Below, piece after piece: positions 13,160 to 61,417 of a stretch of 64,000 nucleotides of DNA. The stretch spans positions 366,230-430,229 of IMG/VR virus record IMGVR_UViG_3300044796_000657; one strand, written 5' to 3'. The position numbers were made by a program, and so were the translations under genes. Numbering within the stretch: the first letter of the stretch is position 1; each line of letters starts with the position of its first letter. The notes under the pieces were generated by a model. That model was not told the origin of the DNA. It made no database searches and saw nothing but the letters and a program-made list of their open reading frames with translations.

Positions 13160-13710
13160 TACTCATCACTCTCTTCTGAACCACCCGAACTTGATGAAAT
13201 GCCTTCTTCATCCTCTTCTTCCAATTCCGCTAATTCTTCCGTTGGAACTTCAACATCGTCGGACATCACTTTGAACTCTTCGCATTGAGGAATGGATTTG
13301 CTCTTCAGCCAATCGTGGAATACCATTAACAATTGTTTCCATACTTCTTCGGTCATTGCCATATAGACTTCGGAAGACACGATCAAGTTAATGGCGTCGT
13401 ATCTCGCTTCATCTTCTTCCGACAAATAAGCCTGGCCGGGAACAAAGATTGCGCCGTGAGTATCGGCCAATAGTTTTTCGTCAGTTGTTTCTTTGAACCA
13501 CAACCAAGGAAAATACCATTCACCTGTCTTTGTCTTCAATCGCCCTACGTATGACTCTTCGGGATTAACATCAGGCTCCATTTCGCCCGTTACAGTAAAG
13601 ACGATTTTACCGCAAAAGTAATTTTCATCATCTGTAGTGATATTGAAAAAATCCACAGGATAGTCATAATCACCTATCTTGAATGTTCCGCTACCAGTTG
13701 TTTCGCTCAT
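13159..13710 (-). CDS. acidic hypothetical protein
   Basis: ORF 183 aa with Glu-rich tail. Confidence 0.65.
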   Translation of the reverse strand: MSETTGSGTFKIGDYDYPVDFFNITTDDENYFCGKIVFTVTGEMEPDVNPEESYVGRLKTKTGEWYFPWLWFKETTDEKLLADTHGAIFVPGQAYLSEEDEARYDAINLIVSSEVYMAMTEEVWKQLLMVFHDWLKSKSIPQCEEFKVMSDDVEVPTEELAELEEEDEEGISSSSGGSEESDE

Positions 13711-17597: not shown

Positions 17598-17665
17598 GAA
17601 CCATCCGGCGGATCGGCGCTAAGTTTGCGAAATTTGGATGGCAAGTTCGACTCTTGCATGGTTCA
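17598..17665 (+). tRNA. atypical tRNA-Arg(GCG)-like, compact D-arm
   Basis: Acceptor gaaccat/atggttc; loop tt-gcg-aa; T-arm gcaag-ttcgact-cttgc. Confidence 0.55.
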
Positions 17666-17811
17666 CTTTGACTAACTCTGTGAAGCGGAGCGGTAGCATA
17701 ACCCCTACCGGTTTAATGAGTGTAGGCTGTGGCAGGCGAAATAACGCTAAGGCCAATGACACTTAACCTTTATCGTGACATTAAGATGATGATAAAGTGA
17801 ATGTCGAACAT

Positions 17812-33644: not shown

Positions 33645-33718
33645 GGGCCTATAGTTCAACCGGGGAGAACATCCAACAGGAATGTTGGAAGGTCGAGGTT
33701 CAAATCCTCATAAGCCCA
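33645..33718 (+). ncRNA. tRNA-like RNA with GGAA-capped 7-bp arm instead of a 7-nt anticodon loop
   Basis: gggccta/taagccc, D-arm gttc/gaac, tccaaca-ggaa-tgttgga, T-arm. Confidence 0.7.
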
Positions 33719-33722
33719 CTTT

Positions 33723-36970: not shown

Positions 36971-37038
36971 CGCAATCGTACGGGGTACAGTTGGTTCTCA
37001 TAAGACTAATTTGCTGAGTTCGAGTCTCAGGTTTGCGA
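36971..37038 (+). tRNA. atypical tRNA(CAU), compact D-arm
   Basis: cgcaatc/gtttgcg; gtac-ggg-gtac mini arm; loop ct-cat-aa; T-arm ctgag-ttcgagt-ctcag. Confidence 0.6.
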
Positions 37039-44107: not shown

Positions 44108-44569
44108 ATGGAAGTTCACATCAGATCGCATAAAGAAGCATTGGCAATGATTGTTGCCAAGCCGAATACGTACGATGTGATTTTCATCAATGAGCCGTAT
44201 TTCGGTGTTGATGCGATATTTAAACAAAAATCTCGCAGCTTAACAACTCACTTTTTCCATGATCTTGAAAGACCTATCAAGGGAAGAAGGATGCCAAAAT
44301 ACAACGACGTTAAGGCAATGTTGGATTTTGTAGATAAGAAATCCAACATTCTCTGCTGTTGTCCAAGTGGAATTTCTCGCAGCGCAGCCATTGGGTATGC
44401 TGTTACGTGTATGAAATTTTACAACCCCGAAGCGGCCTTGAAAATTTTAGATTATGATAAGCATATTCCCAATGTATTAATTTCACAATACGCAAGTGAA
44501 ATTTTACAAAAACCAGACATACTCGGTCGCATCAATCGGTTTAGAGAAGGTGTTTTTTCCACCCTATAA
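44108..44569 (+). CDS. protein-tyrosine/dual-specificity phosphatase-like protein
   Basis: CCCPSGISRSAA (Cx5R), FFHD, HIPN. Confidence 0.8.
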   Translation: MEVHIRSHKEALAMIVAKPNTYDVIFINEPYFGVDAIFKQKSRSLTTHFFHDLERPIKGRRMPKYNDVKAMLDFVDKKSNILCCCPSGISRSAAIGYAVTCMKFYNPEAALKILDYDKHIPNVLISQYASEILQKPDILGRINRFREGVFSTL

Positions 44570-44582
44570 AGGCAAGATTAAT

Positions 44583-45863
44583 ATGTCCATGCTCGCCGAA
44601 GCTAAACAGCAATTAGAAGCCGCTTACAAATATGCTTCCATTGATCCTGAATCGTGGGAGCGTCTTCAACACCCCCAAAGAACCATACAATGTGCCATTC
44701 CTATGAGGCACGATGATGGGGTACTTCAAGTTTACAAAGCGTACAGATGTCAATACGACACGACATTGGGGCCAGCAAAGGGCGGCATTCGCTACCATCC
44801 ACACGTTGACCGTGACCATTGTGAAGCATTAGCCTTCTGGATGACTTTCAAGTGTGCTGCTGTTAAGATTCCTTTCGGTGGGGCAAAAGGTGGAATTGCC
44901 GTTGATGCCAAGAGTCTTTCCCACCGAGAATTGGAACGATTGAGCAAAGCTTACATTGATGCTTTCGCCGATGTGATTGGCCCGGACATTGATATTCCGG
45001 CACCTGATATGTATACCGACGAACGGACGATGGGTTGGATGTACAGCGAATACCGCAAGATCAAGGGCGGTCATCCCAAAGATATGATTACTGGTAAGCC
45101 GACTGCTTTGGGTGGCATTGAAGGCCGACACAGTGCTACAGGATACGGTGGCTTTTTCGTCTTGGATACAATTCTGAAGCAATACGCAAGTCAAATCAAT
45201 TTGAAGTTAAGTGAAGGCCAAAAAACCATTGCCTTACAGGGATTTGGTAAGGTCGGTACTTGGCTTGCCGAAAAGGCTTGGGAGCAAGGATACAAAGTTG
45301 TTGCGATCACTAATGAATTTGGCGGTGTATATGAACCCAAACACGGTTTACATATTCCTACTGCCAAAGCCGCACAAGAAGAATCGGGCGGTAAGAGTTG
45401 GGGTGTCCACGCAGCGGAAACATCTGTTATCACCAATGAAGATTTGTTAGCTTTGGATGTTGACGTTCTTGTCCCTGCCGCAATGGAACGAGTGATTACA
45501 GACAAGAATGCGAATGCTGTACAGGCCAAGATTATTTTGGAGCTTGCCAACGGCCCGACTACGAATGCGGCTGATACCATTTTGAATGATCGTGGAATTT
45601 TTGTTATCCCAGACATTTTGGCGAATGCCGGTGGGGTGGTTGTCAGTTATTTTGAATGGGTGCAAAACAGAGGTGGCATCGTTAAGTCACTAGAAGAAGT
45701 GAATAAGGAATTACGTACGGTTATGTTGGGAGCAACGAACAAAGCGATGGATCGATTACTGGAATTCAAAATCCCGCTTAGGACAGCAACGTACGCATTA
45801 GCTTTGAAGCGTATCGGAATGGCTAATGAGAGCCTTGGCGTGAGGCAGTATTTCAGGAAATAA
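44583..45863 (+). CDS. gdhA: Glu/Leu/Phe/Val dehydrogenase (glutamate dehydrogenase)
   Basis: GPAKGGIRY, GGAKGG, DIPAPD, ITGKP, QGFGKVG, ELANGP, ANAGGV. Confidence 0.93.
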   Translation: MSMLAEAKQQLEAAYKYASIDPESWERLQHPQRTIQCAIPMRHDDGVLQVYKAYRCQYDTTLGPAKGGIRYHPHVDRDHCEALAFWMTFKCAAVKIPFGGAKGGIAVDAKSLSHRELERLSKAYIDAFADVIGPDIDIPAPDMYTDERTMGWMYSEYRKIKGGHPKDMITGKPTALGGIEGRHSATGYGGFFVLDTILKQYASQINLKLSEGQKTIALQGFGKVGTWLAEKAWEQGYKVVAITNEFGGVYEPKHGLHIPTAKAAQEESGGKSWGVHAAETSVITNEDLLALDVDVLVPAAMERVITDKNANAVQAKIILELANGPTTNAADTILNDRGIFVIPDILANAGGVVVSYFEWVQNRGGIVKSLEEVNKELRTVMLGATNKAMDRLLEFKIPLRTATYALALKRIGMANESLGVRQYFRK

Positions 45864-47000: not shown

Positions 47001-49838
47001 ATGAATCTTGACCCTAACACTCGTGAACAAGAAGTTCTCAAATTGTGGAAGGGTCAAGATACGTTTCAGGCGATTCAATTTCGTCGGAAATCGGCTAAGC
47101 CTTTTGTGATGTTTGAAGGCCCGCCAACCGCCAATGGCAAACCCGGCATCCATCACGTTCTCACCCGCACATTTAAAGATGCAATCGCACGCTTCCAAAC
47201 CATGAAAGGCCGTTACGTTGAACGACGGGCCGGATGGGATGAACACGGATTGCCAGTAGAATTAGAAGTCCAAAAAGCCTACGGACTCCCCACCAAAGAA
47301 TCCATTCTCGATTACGGTGTTGCTGAATTTAATAACAACTGCCAAGTCAGCACCCGCAACTTCATCGCCGATTGGGAAAAATTAACCCACCGAATGGGTT
47401 ATTGGCTCGATTTTGAAAACGCCTATAACACATCAGATCCTAGTTATATCAACAAAGTTTGGACAGTCTTAGATAATCTCATGGCTAATGATGAGATTTA
47501 TCAAGACTATAAAATCGTGCCTTGGGCTTGCGATTCCCAAACCGTCTTATCCAATTCAGAATTAGAACAAGGTTATAAAGAGGTTGAACACAATACGATG
47601 ACGGTTAAATTCCGCATCGATGATGACACCAATACCTATCTGATCGCATGGACAACTACCCCTTGGACATTGCCAGCTAATATGGCTTTAGCAGTCAATC
47701 CTTCGTTAACATATTACGAAACCATTGACTCAGAGGGGTGCCATTGCATTAGCCTCAAAAAAACCGAACCCTCATTACCAATCAGTGGCCACAAACTTGT
47801 CGGCCTAAAATATCGTCACCCATTTATCTCTGGTAAGGTCTGTCAAGTCTATGGCGACAACTTCGTTAGAGGCGATACAGGAACCGGAATTGTACATATC
47901 GCACCTGCTTTTGGCATTGATGATTACGCTCTTTGGAAAAAGAGTATGGCCCTTGAGCCAATCATCTGTCACGTAAATCCGGATGGTTCTTTCAACGCAG
48001 CAGCTCCAGACTTGCTGCGAGGCATCAATTTGTTGGACAGAAATTTCAAAACTGTTAACTCTTTAATTCATGCCCACTTGACTTCGGCAGGAGCAAACTA
48101 CGAAAATCAATCCTTCAAGGATTCGGGATTTACACATCAATACCCGCACAATTGGCGAACGGGTAAGCCTCTTATCTATATGTTTAGACATAGTTGGTTC
48201 GTGAAAACAACCGGCCTCAAACTTCGTCAAGTTAACAAAGAAGAAGTGACTTGGTATCCTAGTAATATCAAAGAAGGTAGATTTGGACAATGGCTTGATG
48301 GTGGCAAAGATTGGGCAATTTCCCGTGAACGATTTTGGGGTACACCGTTGCCCTTTTATCGTGATGCTGACAATAACGTCTCTTTCCAAGTCCCTCAATA
48401 TTATCACAAGCCGGGTTCTGATACGCCCATCGTCAAAGATAGAGTAATCTGGAAACGAACCTCAGAAGTTTTGGACTGCTGGTTCGATAGTGGCGCAATG
48501 CCGTTTGCCGCTTATGAGAAGTTCCAGCCAGCCGATGTAATTTGTGAGGGCATCGATCAAACCCGTGGGTGGTTCTATTCGTTAATGGTTATTGGTGTTG
48601 CTCTCACAGAACATACGCCATTCAAGGCAGCGATTTGCCTCGGCCATGTTCTGGATAAGAACGGCGTGAAAATGAGCAAGTCCAAAAAGAATGCTGTTGA
48701 TCCTTGGGAAGTTTTTGAGCGAGAAGGCGCTGATGCCGTTCGTTGGTACATGCTCAAAACACCAATCGGACAATCTCTTTTGTGGAATGAAGCCGAAGTT
48801 AAAAAAGTCAATCAAACATTCTTCAATCGCTTGCTTAGCTCTCTTGACTTTTACGAGCAACAACAAAACCCCGACAAGCCTCATCGATCTAGTAATGGGT
48901 CAAAAGATGCTACGGATATTTGGATGATGGCACGCCTACACAGTGTTGTTAACAGCGTATCCCAATATTTGGAAGATTATGAATTTGCCAAAGCGATTGA
49001 AGCCATTGAGCTTTTTACCAACGATCTTTCTAATGTTTGGATTAGAACAAATCGATCACGATTCCTTGCTGATGGTGCCCATGTTCCTAACGGTATTTTG
49101 AAAAACTGCCTAAAAACACTAACATTGTTAATTGCACCGTTGGCGCCGATGTTGGCTGAACATGTCTGGTATCGTTTGTGTCCAGAAAACATTGTTTATG
49201 GAAGCATGGGTTCGGTACATGCTACCGATTGGCCTAAACCAGAAGATAATACGTGGGACGCATTCTCAAAAAATATTGTTATTCTTGAAGCCATGAAAGA
49301 AGCTCGTCAAGTTATCACTGAAGGCTTGAAACAGAGAGACAAGCGGAATATCCGTTTGAGGCAACCGATCAAAGCAGTGCGGGTGCCTCGTAACATCAAT
49401 CCACAACTCATTCAATTCGTCAAGACGGAGTTGAATGTTAAAGACATCATCGTTGATGCTAAGGGGGAATCCGTGGAAATGGATTTCAACCTTACGGATG
49501 AACTTGTAGCGGAAGGTATGGCAAGAGATTTGATGCGGGCTATTCAAGTTCGCCGCAAAGATTTAGGTTTGAAGCGTGGTGAACCAATTCGTATCGTATT
49601 GGAAGTCGATAAAAAGACCAGATCCATGCTTGAACCACATATGAGTGAGTTGATGTTAAGTGTGACTTGTGGTGATCTGCGATACAAAGAAGTCGCAGAT
49701 ACAGCATCGCCGATTGTAATGGAAGTCACAAAAATGGAACCGGCTAACCCAGATGGCTATAAGGAATTCGGAAAAGCCACAACAAAACTGACTTCTGCTG
49801 AAATCGCCAAAGTGATATTGACAAATCGTGTCGGTTAA
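47001..49838 (+). CDS. ileS: isoleucyl-tRNA synthetase (type 2-like)
   Basis: FEGPPTANGKPGIHH, GWDEHGLP, WTTTPWTL, GTGIVH, DWAISRERFWG, EGIDQTRGWF, KMSKS. Confidence 0.93.
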   Translation: MNLDPNTREQEVLKLWKGQDTFQAIQFRRKSAKPFVMFEGPPTANGKPGIHHVLTRTFKDAIARFQTMKGRYVERRAGWDEHGLPVELEVQKAYGLPTKESILDYGVAEFNNNCQVSTRNFIADWEKLTHRMGYWLDFENAYNTSDPSYINKVWTVLDNLMANDEIYQDYKIVPWACDSQTVLSNSELEQGYKEVEHNTMTVKFRIDDDTNTYLIAWTTTPWTLPANMALAVNPSLTYYETIDSEGCHCISLKKTEPSLPISGHKLVGLKYRHPFISGKVCQVYGDNFVRGDTGTGIVHIAPAFGIDDYALWKKSMALEPIICHVNPDGSFNAAAPDLLRGINLLDRNFKTVNSLIHAHLTSAGANYENQSFKDSGFTHQYPHNWRTGKPLIYMFRHSWFVKTTGLKLRQVNKEEVTWYPSNIKEGRFGQWLDGGKDWAISRERFWGTPLPFYRDADNNVSFQVPQYYHKPGSDTPIVKDRVIWKRTSEVLDCWFDSGAMPFAAYEKFQPADVICEGIDQTRGWFYSLMVIGVALTEHTPFKAAICLGHVLDKNGVKMSKSKKNAVDPWEVFEREGADAVRWYMLKTPIGQSLLWNEAEVKKVNQTFFNRLLSSLDFYEQQQNPDKPHRSSNGSKDATDIWMMARLHSVVNSVSQYLEDYEFAKAIEAIELFTNDLSNVWIRTNRSRFLADGAHVPNGILKNCLKTLTLLIAPLAPMLAEHVWYRLCPENIVYGSMGSVHATDWPKPEDNTWDAFSKNIVILEAMKEARQVITEGLKQRDKRNIRLRQPIKAVRVPRNINPQLIQFVKTELNVKDIIVDAKGESVEMDFNLTDELVAEGMARDLMRAIQVRRKDLGLKRGEPIRIVLEVDKKTRSMLEPHMSELMLSVTCGDLRYKEVADTASPIVMEVTKMEPANPDGYKEFGKATTKLTSAEIAKVILTNRVG

Positions 49839-49876: not shown

Positions 49877-51313
49877 ATGAAAAAGGCAGAATTAGTAGAA
49901 GCAGGCATTCCCGTGAATTGCCATGCTGCTGCCATTAAGGTCATTCAAGATGGCTTCCGGCACAAAATCTTCCCTTCCAACAAAGGGGCACGGGAAGCTT
50001 TAACGAGAGTGGCCGCTGCGCCTGAAATGCACCTCGGCGCAGACGACTTCTACCGAGAATTGGCAAGCACCATCATTGCCACCCGCAAACAGCACGTTGA
50101 AGACGAAGCTCTTTACGCCAAAAACAGCATTGGTACAAGCCAATCGTTTGCCTCTTGGGGTGCCGACATTGAACAAGGTGCCATTGATCAAATGCAAAAT
50201 GCGGTATCCCTGCCAGTTTCAGTGGTCGGCGCCATGATGCCCGATGCCCACAGTGGGTACGGTTTGCCCGTAGGCGGTGTTCTGGCCACATACGACAGCA
50301 TCGTTCCTTATGCGGTAGGCGTCGATATTGGTTGCCGGATGCGTTTTACGTTCACCGATATCGATCCATCACTCCTCAAGGATTCTCACGACAAGAAGGC
50401 GACTCCGCTCTGTAAAGCCTTGCGTGAAGGAACGGTTTTTGGCGTCGGCGGTCAACACGAAATTAAGATGAACCATCCAGTCATGGACAAGGATTGGAAC
50501 ATCACGGCTGTCACAAAAGCCGCCAAAGATAAGGCATGGCGGCAGTTGGGAACCAGCGGTTCCGGCAATCACTTCGCCGAATGGGGCATTGTGACGTTAA
50601 CTCAAAAAGAATTCGGTTTAGAGCCGGGGAAATACGTCGCTCTCATGACTCACAGCGGCTCCCGTGGTTCGGGTTCTGATGTTTGTAGTTACTATACCGA
50701 CGTTGCCGCTTCCAAGCTGCCAAAGGCTTATGAGAAATTCGGCAAAATGAAATTGGCGTGGTTGCCAATGGCTTCCGAAGCTGGCCAAGAGTATTGGGCA
50801 GCTATGAACCTTATGGGTGATTATGCCGCTGCCAATCACTACGTCATTCACGAATTGGTTCTCAAGAATATGGGAGCAACGGCCCTTAAAGTGATTGAGA
50901 ACCACCACAATTTCGCATGGAAAGAAGATTACAAGGGAACCGAAGTGTACGTTCACCGTAAAGGTGCTACACCTGCCGGAAAGGGCGTACTGGGTATTAT
51001 CCCCGGTAGTATGGCCACTTCCGCATTCGTCGTACGAGGCAAGGGCAATCCTGAAAGCTTGATGTCGGCTTCTCACGGTGCCGGGCGGGCAATGAGCCGC
51101 ACCAAAGCTAAGGAACAGTTTAACTGGAGCACATGGAAGAGCCAAATCCAAAATGCCGGTGTACGACTATTGAGCGGCGGGATTGATGAGGTTCCCGGTG
51201 CTTACAAAGACATTCACAAAGTCATGGCTCAACAAACCGACTTGATTGATGTTGTGGCAGAATTCATGCCCAAAATCGTCCTCATGGGTCAAGATGGTCG
51301 GAGCGAAGATTAA
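49877..51313 (+). CDS. rtcB: RtcB RNA ligase
   Basis: PDAHSGYGLPVGG, GVDIGC, GSGNHF, HSGSRG, HHNFA, HRKGAT, PGSM, SASHGAGR, DEVPGAYK. Confidence 0.95.
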   Translation: MKKAELVEAGIPVNCHAAAIKVIQDGFRHKIFPSNKGAREALTRVAAAPEMHLGADDFYRELASTIIATRKQHVEDEALYAKNSIGTSQSFASWGADIEQGAIDQMQNAVSLPVSVVGAMMPDAHSGYGLPVGGVLATYDSIVPYAVGVDIGCRMRFTFTDIDPSLLKDSHDKKATPLCKALREGTVFGVGGQHEIKMNHPVMDKDWNITAVTKAAKDKAWRQLGTSGSGNHFAEWGIVTLTQKEFGLEPGKYVALMTHSGSRGSGSDVCSYYTDVAASKLPKAYEKFGKMKLAWLPMASEAGQEYWAAMNLMGDYAAANHYVIHELVLKNMGATALKVIENHHNFAWKEDYKGTEVYVHRKGATPAGKGVLGIIPGSMATSAFVVRGKGNPESLMSASHGAGRAMSRTKAKEQFNWSTWKSQIQNAGVRLLSGGIDEVPGAYKDIHKVMAQQTDLIDVVAEFMPKIVLMGQDGRSED

Positions 51314-52749: not shown

Positions 52750-54741
52750 ATGAACAGTCAATTTGGTTTTGTCTGCGTTGGAGCAGGTTCGTCACGTGTT
52801 TCAGTCGGCAACCCCGTCTATAACGCCGATGAAACCATTGCTCTGATACGCAGAATGAAAGATTGTGATATTGTGGTTCTCCAAGAGTTGGGGATCACTG
52901 GCTACACTTGTCGCAATCTTTTCAGTCAAGAGCTTCTTATTAACTCTGCTGCACAGCAGGTTCAACGTGTCGCCGAAGCAACCAATTGGGTCAAAAATGG
53001 GATTCCCCCTCAATTGGTCTTTGTAGGCTGTCCCATATACGTTAACAACAATCTGTACAATTGCGCCGTAGCGATCCAAGACGGCGAAGTGATCGGTATC
53101 GTCCCGAAGCAGCACCTTCCCAATTACAAGGAATTTGAAGAAACTCGTTGGTTTCAACCCGGTTCTTCTAAGTTGCCACAATCCATTAAGTGGCAAGGCG
53201 AAACCGTCCCATTTGGCACTGATCTCCTATTTGACTTCGGCAACAATGTTGTCGTCGGTGTGGAAATTTGTGAAGATTTGTGGATGCCTATTCCGCCTAG
53301 TTCCCATCAGGCACAAGCGGGCGCAACCATTTTAGTTAACCTTTCGGCGTCCAATGAAACGGTTGCCAAAGCAGACTACCGTCGTGATTTGGTAGTTGGA
53401 CAATCTGGCCGATGTATTGCCGCATACGTTTATTCGTCTGCCGGGCCTTCCGAATCGACAACAGACTTGATTTTCGGCGGTCACTGTATGATTGCCGAAA
53501 ATGGGAGCCTCTTGAAACAGTCCAAGAGAGTTGGCGATGGATCAAAGCTGTCGTTCAATTCGCACTTCATCATGGGTGATGTTGATGTGCAAAAGATTAT
53601 GTTTGAGAGACGGCAAACTACAAGCTATGGCCAAGAAGTCAGGTTGAACTACCGCAGAATTAACGTTCGCTCACGACAAAAAACCAAAACATTACATCGC
53701 ACCATTGACAGTATGCCATTTGTTCCCAAAGACTCTGGTAAACTCAATGAACGATGTACGGAAATTTTCGCCTATCAAGTGGCCGGTCTTGCTTGTCGTC
53801 TCAACAGAATAGGACGCTACAATCCTGTGATCGGTGTTTCGGGTGGTTTAGACTCCACTTTGGCGTTGCTTGTGTTAGCGAAAACGTTCGAAGCTCTTGG
53901 TATTGATCCCGGCAAGATCCAAGGAATCACGATGCCCGGTTTCGGTACCACCAGCCGGACGCTTGACAACGCTAAAAAGCTGATGGATCAATTGAAAATC
54001 AGCCAAACGACCATTGACGTTTGTCATTTGAGTTTGGAAACATTCCGTCAGATGGGACACAAACCTTTCGGACTTTCGCCTTATCTGGAAATGGATAAAT
54101 TTAAAGAAGCACTCAAAGGTTTAAAGAAACAAGATCGTCATGATCTTGTTTTTGAGAACGTTCAAGCGAGAGTGCGAACCCACTTCCTAATGAATCAGGG
54201 CTTCGTCGTTGGCACTGGCGACTTAACCGAAGCAGCGTTGGGTTGGTGCACGTTCAATGCTGACCATATGAGTATGTACAACCCCAATTGCTCTGTACCA
54301 AAGACATTGGTCAAGTTCCTAGTCAAATGGGCCGCTGAAAACGAATTCGACGGCAAAACACAAAAAACCCTGCTCGATATTGTTGATACGGAAATTTCGC
54401 CCGAATTGTTGCCGGTGGACAATGAGGGGAAAGCTCAATCTACCCAAGATACGTTGGGGGCTTTTGAGTTACATGACTTTTTCCTATTCAACATTATTCG
54501 GAATGGATTTTCACCGGATAAAGTGTTATTCTTAGCGGAATATGCCTTTGACGGTGCTTACAAAAAAGAAGTTATTCACAAGACGTTGAAGTTATTTTAT
54601 GAAAAATTCTTCCGCAATCAGTTCAAACGAAATTGCGTTCCCGATGGTGTTAAAGTTGGATCTGTGAGTTTGTCGCCCCGTGGTGATTGGCGAATGTCTT
54701 CCGACTCCGATCCCACTCTTTGGCTTAAGGAGCTACAGTAA
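52750..54741 (+). CDS. nadE: glutamine-dependent NAD+ synthetase
   Basis: Nitrilase-like domain (QELGITGY, PKQHLPNY, EICEDLW), GVSGGLDSTL, ENVQARVR, GTGDLTE. Confidence 0.95.
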   Translation: MNSQFGFVCVGAGSSRVSVGNPVYNADETIALIRRMKDCDIVVLQELGITGYTCRNLFSQELLINSAAQQVQRVAEATNWVKNGIPPQLVFVGCPIYVNNNLYNCAVAIQDGEVIGIVPKQHLPNYKEFEETRWFQPGSSKLPQSIKWQGETVPFGTDLLFDFGNNVVVGVEICEDLWMPIPPSSHQAQAGATILVNLSASNETVAKADYRRDLVVGQSGRCIAAYVYSSAGPSESTTDLIFGGHCMIAENGSLLKQSKRVGDGSKLSFNSHFIMGDVDVQKIMFERRQTTSYGQEVRLNYRRINVRSRQKTKTLHRTIDSMPFVPKDSGKLNERCTEIFAYQVAGLACRLNRIGRYNPVIGVSGGLDSTLALLVLAKTFEALGIDPGKIQGITMPGFGTTSRTLDNAKKLMDQLKISQTTIDVCHLSLETFRQMGHKPFGLSPYLEMDKFKEALKGLKKQDRHDLVFENVQARVRTHFLMNQGFVVGTGDLTEAALGWCTFNADHMSMYNPNCSVPKTLVKFLVKWAAENEFDGKTQKTLLDIVDTEISPELLPVDNEGKAQSTQDTLGAFELHDFFLFNIIRNGFSPDKVLFLAEYAFDGAYKKEVIHKTLKLFYEKFFRNQFKRNCVPDGVKVGSVSLSPRGDWRMSSDSDPTLWLKELQ

Positions 54742-58220: not shown

Positions 58221-58296
58221 GGTCTCGTAACATAGTCTGGTCTAATGTGCCGATCTTATAAGTCGGATATCGAAAGTTCAAATCTTTCCGAGACTA
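58221..58296 (+). tRNA. tRNA-Ile(UAU)
   Basis: ccgat-ct-tat-aa-gtcgg; A73. Confidence 0.88.
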
Positions 58297-58297
58297 C

Positions 58298-58369
58298 TGT
58301 CGTTTAGCTGAGTGGTAAAGCGTCTGTACGACATGCAGAAGATCATCGGTTCAATTCCGGTAACGACAA
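58298..58369 (+). tRNA. tRNA-Val(GAC), C33
   Basis: tctgt-ac-gac-at-gcaga. Confidence 0.8.
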
Positions 58370-58373
58370 CTTT

Positions 58374-58445
58374 GGCTCGTTAGTATAACGGATAGTGCGG
58401 TTGTTTCCTAAACGACAAGCAGAGGTTCGACTCCTCTACGGGCTA
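58374..58445 (+). tRNA. tRNA-Arg(CCU)
   Basis: gttgt-tt-cct-aa-acgac. Confidence 0.88.
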
Positions 58446-58450
58446 CTTAT

Positions 58451-58526
58451 GCCTTCGTAATGGCCCCGGTTTCTACCCGGAAGGTGCATAACTGGAATTA
58501 TACAGGTTCGACTCCTGTCGAGGGTG
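58451..58526 (+). tRNA. D-armless tRNA-Arg(UCU)-like with long variable arm
   Basis: gccttcg/cgagggt; 7-nt linker; ccgg-tt-tct-ac-ccgg; T-arm acagg-ttcgact-cctgt. Confidence 0.6.
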
Positions 58527-58545: not shown

Positions 58546-58836
58546 ATGATTATTATGATGAAGAATATTTTGATCGCATTGGCAGTTATCGCAGGTGTGG
58601 CATTCACCACTTCTGCTGCTTCCGCACAACATCGCTATCCCCCAAGAGGTGGTGCTGTTGTTGTAGTTAGACCGCCAGTATATGCCCCACCTGTCGTTGT
58701 AGTTCGCCCACCAGTTTATAATTATAACTACAATTATGGCTATAACTACAACTATGGTTTCTACAATCCGTACTATAATCCATTCATATACGGCAATTCT
58801 TTTTACGGTAGTTCCTTTTTCTTCCGTATTCGTTAA
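58546..58836 (+). CDS. small secreted Pro/Val- and Tyr/Asn-repeat protein
   Basis: Signal peptide, VVVRPPVY repeats, YNYNY tract. Confidence 0.7.
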   Translation: MIIMMKNILIALAVIAGVAFTTSAASAQHRYPPRGGAVVVVRPPVYAPPVVVVRPPVYNYNYNYGYNYNYGFYNPYYNPFIYGNSFYGSSFFFRIR

Positions 58837-61190: not shown

Positions 61191-61344
61191 CTTGGCCTTG
61201 GCTCGTCTGCATATGGATGAACATACCAAGTATGATCACTTACTTGATAAGCCTCAATTTTGTCAAGAAATTGCTCTCGTTCTTCTTCGGTAGCAGATTG
61301 CCACCATTTAATAGCTTCTTCCATTTTATCTCTTACGATTTGAG

Positions 61345-61417
61345 TGGGCGTTGAGGGATTCGAACCCCCGGCTCTTTCCGTGTAAAGGAAATACTCTGGC
61401 CTCTGAGTTAAACGCCC
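61345..61417 (-). tRNA. tRNA-Val(UAC)
   Basis: Reverse strand tttcc-tt-tac-ac-ggaaa; only minus-strand tRNA seen. Confidence 0.92.

Follow-up and report, generated by a model that had tools for sequence, protein, structure and literature searches.

We propose that an element at positions 58451-58526, on the plus strand of a 64-kb stretch of viral DNA (the window), is probably a huge-phage gene for a functional elongator tRNA-Arg(UCU) with a rewired D-arm, and that it comes from a widespread and largely unannotated class of such genes. This proposal draws on sequence comparison. We describe the D-arm as rewired, not lost, because the connector, which joins the acceptor stem to the anticodon stem, base-pairs with the extra region, and because a D-loop-like motif lies in that region. 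The initial annotation had already called the element a tRNA-Arg(UCU)-type gene, and with the anticodon TCT at 58472-58474 and the acceptor stem and T arm in place we arrive at the same assignment. We also agree that its layout is unusual for bacteria and phages; to our knowledge, almost all tRNAs outside organelles have the four-arm cloverleaf.

The window is the final 64 kb of a 430,229-bp IMG/VR virus record (G000). We take this record to be a huge phage because ARAGORN finds 37 tRNAs and a tmRNA in the 430,229 bp, GC content is even over the whole record, and the window encodes a class I aminoacyl-tRNA synthetase and an RtcB RNA ligase. Matches in sequencing runs indicate peat as the sampled habitat. 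The tmRNA lies outside the window (131045-131411 of the record, minus strand) and has the tag VEPELRMAA. The synthetase (Ile/Val/Leu type, 945 aa; 47001-49838) and RtcB (49877-51313) are cell-like genes located between tRNA arrays, as are a glutamate dehydrogenase (44496-45863) and an NAD synthase with a nitrilase domain (52750-54741). A single tRNA of the window, tRNA-Val(UAC) at 61344-61417, is on the minus strand, and the other 32 are on the plus strand. Two tRNAs are short, Arg(GCG) at 17598-17666 (69 nt) and Met(CAT) at 36971-37038 (68 nt); both have D stems reduced to 3 bp and anticodon stems of 6 bp, and both are called by ARAGORN and score under the Rfam gathering score. The tRNA at 33645-33719 has an 8-nt anticodon loop, CAGGAATG, for which ARAGORN reports the four-base anticodon GGAA (Rfam tRNA, 46.9 bits). 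This may be a tRNA of the frameshifting kind or one that is odd in some other way, and three tRNA-Thr genes lie directly downstream of it.

As first annotated, the element closes a tight cluster of four tRNAs. The three upstream members are on the same strand and are canonical by both ARAGORN and the Rfam tRNA model: tRNA-Ile(UAU) at 58221-58297 (62.7 bits), tRNA-Val(GAC) at 58298-58370 (60.0 bits) and tRNA-Arg(CCU) at 58374-58446 (51.1 bits). The gaps along the cluster are 0, 3 and 4 nt, the last being the distance from tRNA-Arg(CCU) to the element. Since the element ends a tight same-strand cluster, its co-transcription with the three upstream tRNAs is plausible. Beginning 20 nt past the element is an ORF (58546-58836) whose 96-aa product is hydrophobic at its N-terminus and has a repetitive tail rich in Asn, Tyr and Gly (NYNYNYGYNYNYG...).

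The outer parts of the element are those of a tRNA. The acceptor 5' strand GCCTTCG (58451-58457) pairs at 7/7 positions with CGAGGGT (58519-58525), two of the pairs being G-U, and the 3' strand is followed by the discriminator G58526; both can be read directly, and CCA is not encoded after G58526 in this copy. The T arm, ACAGG-TTCGACT-CCTGT (58502-58518), is paired at 5/5 positions. Between the acceptor and anticodon stems there is no D hairpin. Instead, a linker of 7 nt, TAATGGC (58458-58464), stands where the D-arm should be, which bears out the first description. It consists of U8 A9 A10 (58458-58460), of which T8 and A9 never change across the family (alignment A2), and of TGGC (58461-58464), which, by homology, would be one strand of a relocated D-like helix at the site of D-stem positions 22-25, just before N26. 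The anticodon arm (58465-58481) had been described as normal. This is correct for its UCU loop, TTTCTAC (58470-58476, with U33 and a purine at 37), but not for its stem, which has 4 bp (CCGG/CCGG) and a C27:A43 mismatch; position 27 is paired with 43 in only 30/54 relatives. The extra region that follows is 20 nt long (58482-58501). It contains GTGCA (58484-58488), the putative partner strand of the D-like helix, which corresponds to D-stem positions 10-13 and is assigned from family pair counts. Next comes the D-loop-like motif TAACTGGA (58489-58496), which by analogy would represent A14 A15 .. G18 G19 A20, and then a connector ATTAT (58497-58501), whose final T (58501) is a Y48-like base.

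Standard tools do not recognize this arrangement. ARAGORN in bacterial mode made no call for the element, and the Rfam tRNA model RF00005 gave no match to it, even at E up to 10. The tRNA-Sec model (RF01852) gave 16.1 bits (E = 2.1) against a threshold of 47 bits. When ARAGORN was also run with introns, with lowered thresholds and in mitochondrial mode, only the options '-mt -ps90' called anything: an mtRNA-Ser(GGA) that we rejected as a poor fold, its D-loop being 3 nt long and its anticodon stem mismatched. For some relatives of the element RF00005 is marginal (29.5-38.7 bits, threshold 29), and others are missed.

Folding of the single sequence was equally uninformative. The fold of the element is not above shuffles (z = -0.41). 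The minimum free energy structure (-22.4 kcal/mol) was not adopted: its hairpin is not conserved in relatives and would destroy the anticodon loop. Here the anticodon-stem 5' strand CCGGTT (58466-58471) is complementary to AACTGG of the D-loop-like motif (58490-58495). Nearest-neighbour energies are -17.0 kcal/mol for the rewired model, -17.6 kcal/mol for the variable-region hairpin of the initial annotation and -18.4 kcal/mol for the core alone; they are undecided between the models and do not favour the long-range helix. RNAalifold recovers the acceptor stem, the 4-bp anticodon stem and the T stem only, and predicts neither the 3-bp connector helix nor a variable helix.

The relatives of the element provide the comparative evidence. 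A pattern scan of viral contigs for an anticodon arm followed 18-40 nt later by GGTTCGA returned 89 stretches, about 50 of which have a perfect 7-bp acceptor stem, a 5-bp T stem and a connector of exactly 7 or 8 nt, while their acceptor and anticodon stem sequences differ strongly. We built a covariance model (R1) from 31 relatives, with the window copy in the seed alignment; run over the fetched loci, it gave 69 matches, representing 54 distinct members. On the 430-kb genome R1 finds the element at full length with 82.9 bits as the sole strong match, canonical tRNAs scoring at most 30 bits. As the window sequence sits in the seed, its own score is partly by construction. A position-anchored parse that is independent of R1 also places all of the elements in register.

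Most members are found in metagenomic phage contigs, and others in cultured phages: the Streptomyces phages Gilson and Mildred21 and some 40 related phages, Microbacterium phage Pumpernickel, Sinorhizobium phage Phosso, Stenotrophomonas phage SOVA965, and Pseudomonas phages TC6 and PA11. When the 361-nt cluster was compared with cultured phages by BLAST, nothing matched; short queries did yield relatives. In a pattern scan of bacterial and archaeal genomes, 0/80 loci among the matches listed was a family member; these loci fit the pattern by chance, and the sample is too small to speak for prophages. In the cultured-phage records the genes are mostly unannotated, and three are mislabelled. Mildred21 86379-86453 is entered as 'tRNA-OTHER'; Mildred21 91367-91442 is labelled tRNA-Phe(gaa), its loop CTTCGAA giving the anticodon UCG; and EGole 75265-75341 is labelled tRNA-Leu(UUA), its loop CTGATAA giving GAU. 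These database entries suggest that the genes have been glimpsed, not understood.

The same layout occurs with the anticodons Arg(UCG), Arg(ACG), Ile(UAU) and Ile(GAU), and ACG-UCG-UCU-UAU-GAU form a chain of single-base steps. Loci with these other anticodons are L005:4529-4606, L027:4231-4307, L032:3597-3673, L086:8013-8092, L077:4358-4437, L022:3146-3222, L045:5360-5436 and L025:8810-8891, and, in Mildred21 (MF155946), 73703-73779, 91367-91442 and 94857-94933. In three cultured phages an HNH/homing endonuclease gene ends within a few nucleotides of the 5' end of a rewired tRNA or overlaps it (L094 946-1482 in SOVA965, L095 1038-1490 in TC6 and L225 1-393 in Mildred21). This association may be non-specific because HNH genes also adjoin canonical tRNAs in Mildred21.

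The family alignment argues that these are maintained structures. In alignment A2, 96.3% of cells are paired and 17/20 pairs have changed on both sides; 0/500 shuffles were as good, and slid controls reached 39-51%. Acceptor-stem cells are paired in 98.6% of cases and T-stem cells in 100%, and there are compensatory changes at all 7 acceptor pairs and in all four anticodon-stem pairs. The helix that defines the layout, which we call Hb, is formed by the 3 connector nucleotides before N26 and the 3 nucleotides just 5' of a motif UA(A/G)n(0-4)GG. In a parse anchored on position, not on complementarity, 144/162 Hb cells are paired, versus 35-65 for slid partner positions. With the window's own subfamily left out, 118/123 cells are paired, in 12 strand combinations, among them CGG/CCG, ACC/GGT, CCC/GGG, CTC/GAG, CGC/GCG, CGA/TCG and CAG/CTG, and double changes occur at all 3 pairs.

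Within the window's subfamily (TAATGGC/GTGCA) the helix is less straightforward. The simple register gives T-A, G-C and G:G, and with G58486 bulged there are 4 pairs. The Hb bases of this subfamily are otherwise unvarying; the one informative substitution, C for T58485 in L069, keeps the pair with G58463. Since a G:G or a bulge is needed and the bases do not vary in the subfamily, Hb in the window copy rests on homology. A local D-arm-like hairpin (CAT..ATG) can be drawn in only about half of the subfamily, and we did not adopt it. In the subgroup with an 8-nt connector there is a second helix, in which A9-N-N pairs with the 3 nucleotides after GGA (11/11 paired; AAC/GTT, AGC/GCT and AGT/ACT) and which stacks on the first. 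In the 7-nt-connector group A9/N10 and the bases after GGA show no covariation, and we claim the second helix for the 8-nt group only.

The UA(A/G)n(0-4)GG motif is present in 54/54 members, and its form UAACUGGA matches the D-loop of tRNA-Arg (A14 A15 .. G18 G19 A20). The motif's third position covaries with the nucleotide directly preceding the T stem (A..T in 50 members, G..C in 3 and G..G in 1), and by analogy this resembles a Levitt-like R15-Y48 pair. The further equivalences, U8-A14, the contact of G18/G19 with the T loop, and A20, would hold by position only. The new joins appear sterically plausible because the positions concerned are already neighbours in the canonical L-shape: 8-9 lie beside the top of the D helix, 43-45 beside 10, and 21 beside 48. 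The genome also has a canonical tRNA-Arg(UCU), 411 kb away at 13191-13264 of the record, and the octamer AACTGGAA is shared exactly between its D-loop and the element.

Several features of the family are those of a translating tRNA. The members share the strand of the tRNA arrays in which they lie, and the gaps to adjacent genes are often 0-5 nt; CCA directly follows the discriminator in 28/54; and the family has a TTCGA T loop, U33 and a purine at 37. A weak piece of evidence is a metatranscriptome assembly in which the locus recurs without a sequence difference, in contigs at even depth for which DNA carry-over is possible and RNA ends are not shown; in all, the locus is present in contigs from one DNA run and one RNA library.

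The sequence also contains candidate determinants for arginine. In bacteria ArgRS recognizes A20, C35 and U/G36, A20 being established for E. coli ArgRS. C35 and U36 are present in the element, and at 58494-58496 it has GGA, with an A directly after GG that by analogy would be equivalent to position 20. This A is found in 51/51 members with Arg anticodons, the 3 Ile(UAU) members having U or G there, and the two Ile(GAU) copies that we read have U. By this analogy, the A after GG fits A20 as an ArgRS determinant. Additionally, the anticodon loop TTTCTAC is the same in the element and in the canonical tRNA-Arg(UCU) of the genome.

There is demand for such a tRNA. AGA is the second most used Arg codon in the genome (23.7% of Arg codons, 10.9 per 1000 codons). 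In the glutamate dehydrogenase gene 2/3 AGA codons fall where PDB 3k92 has a conserved Arg, so the codon is read as Arg. As the canonical tRNA-Arg(UCU) coexists with it, the rewired copy is an addition and is not strictly needed for AGA here. Canonical Arg(UCU) is absent among 219 ARAGORN tRNAs in 46 member loci, and SOVA965 has 4 canonical tRNAs, without any other Arg tRNA. In the tRNA region of Mildred21, CCU is the only canonical Arg tRNA annotated, and UCU, UCG and ACG are all rewired (3/4 Arg isoacceptors).

We considered four other explanations. The initial annotation regarded the element as D-armless in the animal-mitochondrial sense, with a floppy 7-nt replacement loop and a class-II-like hairpin in the variable region of roughly 20 nt. 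Such a hairpin can be drawn, with 4 A-U pairs (38-41 with 48-51) at about equal energy (-17.6 kcal/mol), and the weak mitochondrial-mode call of ARAGORN at a lowered threshold points the same way. However, the hairpin adds no stability and is not conserved: over 31 relatives 58.9% of its cells are paired, 413/500 shuffles equal this, and there are 0 compensatory changes. The connector covaries with the extra region instead, and the T loop and GG motif, features typically lost in mitochondrial D-armless tRNAs, are conserved. No full D-arm was found in close relatives either; they share the rewired layout. We therefore consider a truly D-armless tRNA improbable, and the mitochondrial comparison does not stand. 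A slightly less improbable alternative, though still an unlikely one, is a tRNA-like RNA that acts outside translation, either in regulation or by soaking up, as decoy or sponge, host anticodon nucleases or other defences aimed at tRNAs. The coexisting canonical tRNA-Arg(UCU) would suit such a role, as would the tRNA repair genes that are frequent in carriers (RtcB in the window; RNA ligase and polynucleotide kinase in Mildred21). Against it, the features for charging and decoding are conserved, namely the 7-bp acceptor stem, the discriminator, the encoded CCA of the 28 members, an A20-like base that tracks the anticodon, U33 and R37. Moreover, in many arrays and in SOVA965 the rewired gene is the only Arg(UCU), and a decoy need not fill that slot so regularly.

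The remaining two explanations seem to us very improbable, and to the same degree. That the element is a decaying pseudogene, which lost its D-arm and gained an insertion, would account for its rejection by standard tools, for the mismatch in the anticodon stem and for a fold that is not above shuffles, but not for a family of 54 distinct members that has kept all its helices by compensatory changes across unrelated actinobacterial and proteobacterial phages, nor for a window copy that is among the best R1 scores. A recoding tRNA, in which the long extra region makes a substrate for SerRS or LeuRS and AGA is read as another amino acid, is suggested by the superficially class II-like length of that region; allo-tRNAs with non-Ser anticodons do exist (PMC5389517). 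This explanation conflicts with the lack of a conserved variable hairpin, with the A20-like base that follows Arg anticodons and with the alignment of AGA codons with conserved Arg in glutamate dehydrogenase, and AGA is too common in this genome for a harmless ambiguous reading.

Based on these comparisons, we favour the rewired tRNA-Arg(UCU) and propose a model for its structure and use. The RNA would begin with the acceptor 5' strand, U8 A9 N, one strand of the D-like helix, N26, the anticodon arm and a short spacer. It would then continue with the second D-like strand, the UA(A/G)..GGA segment, a few nucleotides to the Y48-like pyrimidine, the T arm and the acceptor 3' strand. The predicted secondary structure is a three-way junction, in which the D-like helix may be able to stack on the anticodon stem and the GG may be able to reach the T loop, forming the elbow. 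The gene would be transcribed together with the three upstream tRNAs, and the tRNA would be excised by RNase P and a 3' nuclease. Nucleotidyltransferase would add CCA, and ArgRS would charge the tRNA through C35, U36 and the A20-like A after GG. The element would then decode AGA. Splicing or ligation back to the canonical order was rejected; three cuts and three joins would be required. The rewired RNA most likely works as transcribed, because no simple cut-and-join restores the order and because there are 46-50 kb carriers without an annotated ligase. As to why the layout is kept, our guess is that it escapes host factors that target canonical tRNAs.

Compared with known systems, the closest is the canonical tRNA-Arg(UCU) of the same genome, which shares with the element the TTTCTAC loop, the octamer, the TTCGA T loop, the 7-bp acceptor stem and the 5-bp T stem. 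The canonical D-loop caps a 4-bp stem between 9 and 26, part of a four-way junction, whereas in the rewired family one D strand precedes N26, the other strand and the loop are 3' of the anticodon arm, the junction is three-way, and 27:43 is often unpaired. The D-armless tRNA-Ser(GCU/UCU) of animal mitochondria, like the element, has no hairpin between the acceptor and anticodon stems and an anticodon that reads AGN. In mitochondrial D-armless tRNAs the replacement loop is short and unpaired, the variable loops are short as well, and the elbow nucleotides of the T and D-loops are degenerate (PMC7609411; PMC4013460), whereas the rewired family retains GG and TTCGA and pairs its connector, with covariation. 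Class II tRNAs (Leu, Ser and bacterial Tyr) and tRNA-Sec also have about 20 extra nucleotides between the anticodon and T arms, but they have their own D-arm and a conserved variable stem-loop, and the rewired family is without a conserved variable helix. In the circularly permuted tRNA genes of Cyanidioschyzon merolae the order of segments is non-canonical, and a circular intermediate leads to a canonical tRNA; in the rewired family, too, segment order departs from the canonical one. Finally, the allo-tRNAs have 8/4 or 9/3 acceptor/T branches, were mined from metagenomes, occur in some phages and keep the D-arm (PMC5389517), whereas the rewired family keeps the 7/5 acceptor/T arrangement and rewires the D-arm.

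In our literature searches no phage or bacterial tRNA of the rewired layout was described, with incomplete coverage that makes an earlier description possible, and phages go unmentioned in a 2020 review of non-canonical tRNAs. We are evenly divided on the broader claim that these genes form a new class of tRNA. In this class the D-arm connectivity would be permuted (9->22, 43->10 and 21->48 in place of 9->10, 21->22 and 43->44) with the contacts of the L-shape (GG with the T loop, R15-Y48 and A20) kept, and the class would be restricted to phages and tied to the chain of Arg and Ile anticodons. It may serve to escape host nucleases that attack tRNAs, or other factors that recognize a canonical D-arm, while satisfying ArgRS or IleRS, EF-Tu and the ribosome.

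If our model is true, an L-shape can be built with an altered strand order as long as the tertiary contacts are kept, and bacterial ArgRS and IleRS, EF-Tu, RNase P and ribosomes accept the new topology. The rewired layout may also offer a scaffold for orthogonal tRNAs. Carriers exist in culture, so direct testing is feasible. For the phages themselves, the tRNA sets of many are undercounted or mislabelled, and analyses of codon usage and host prediction are distorted by this.
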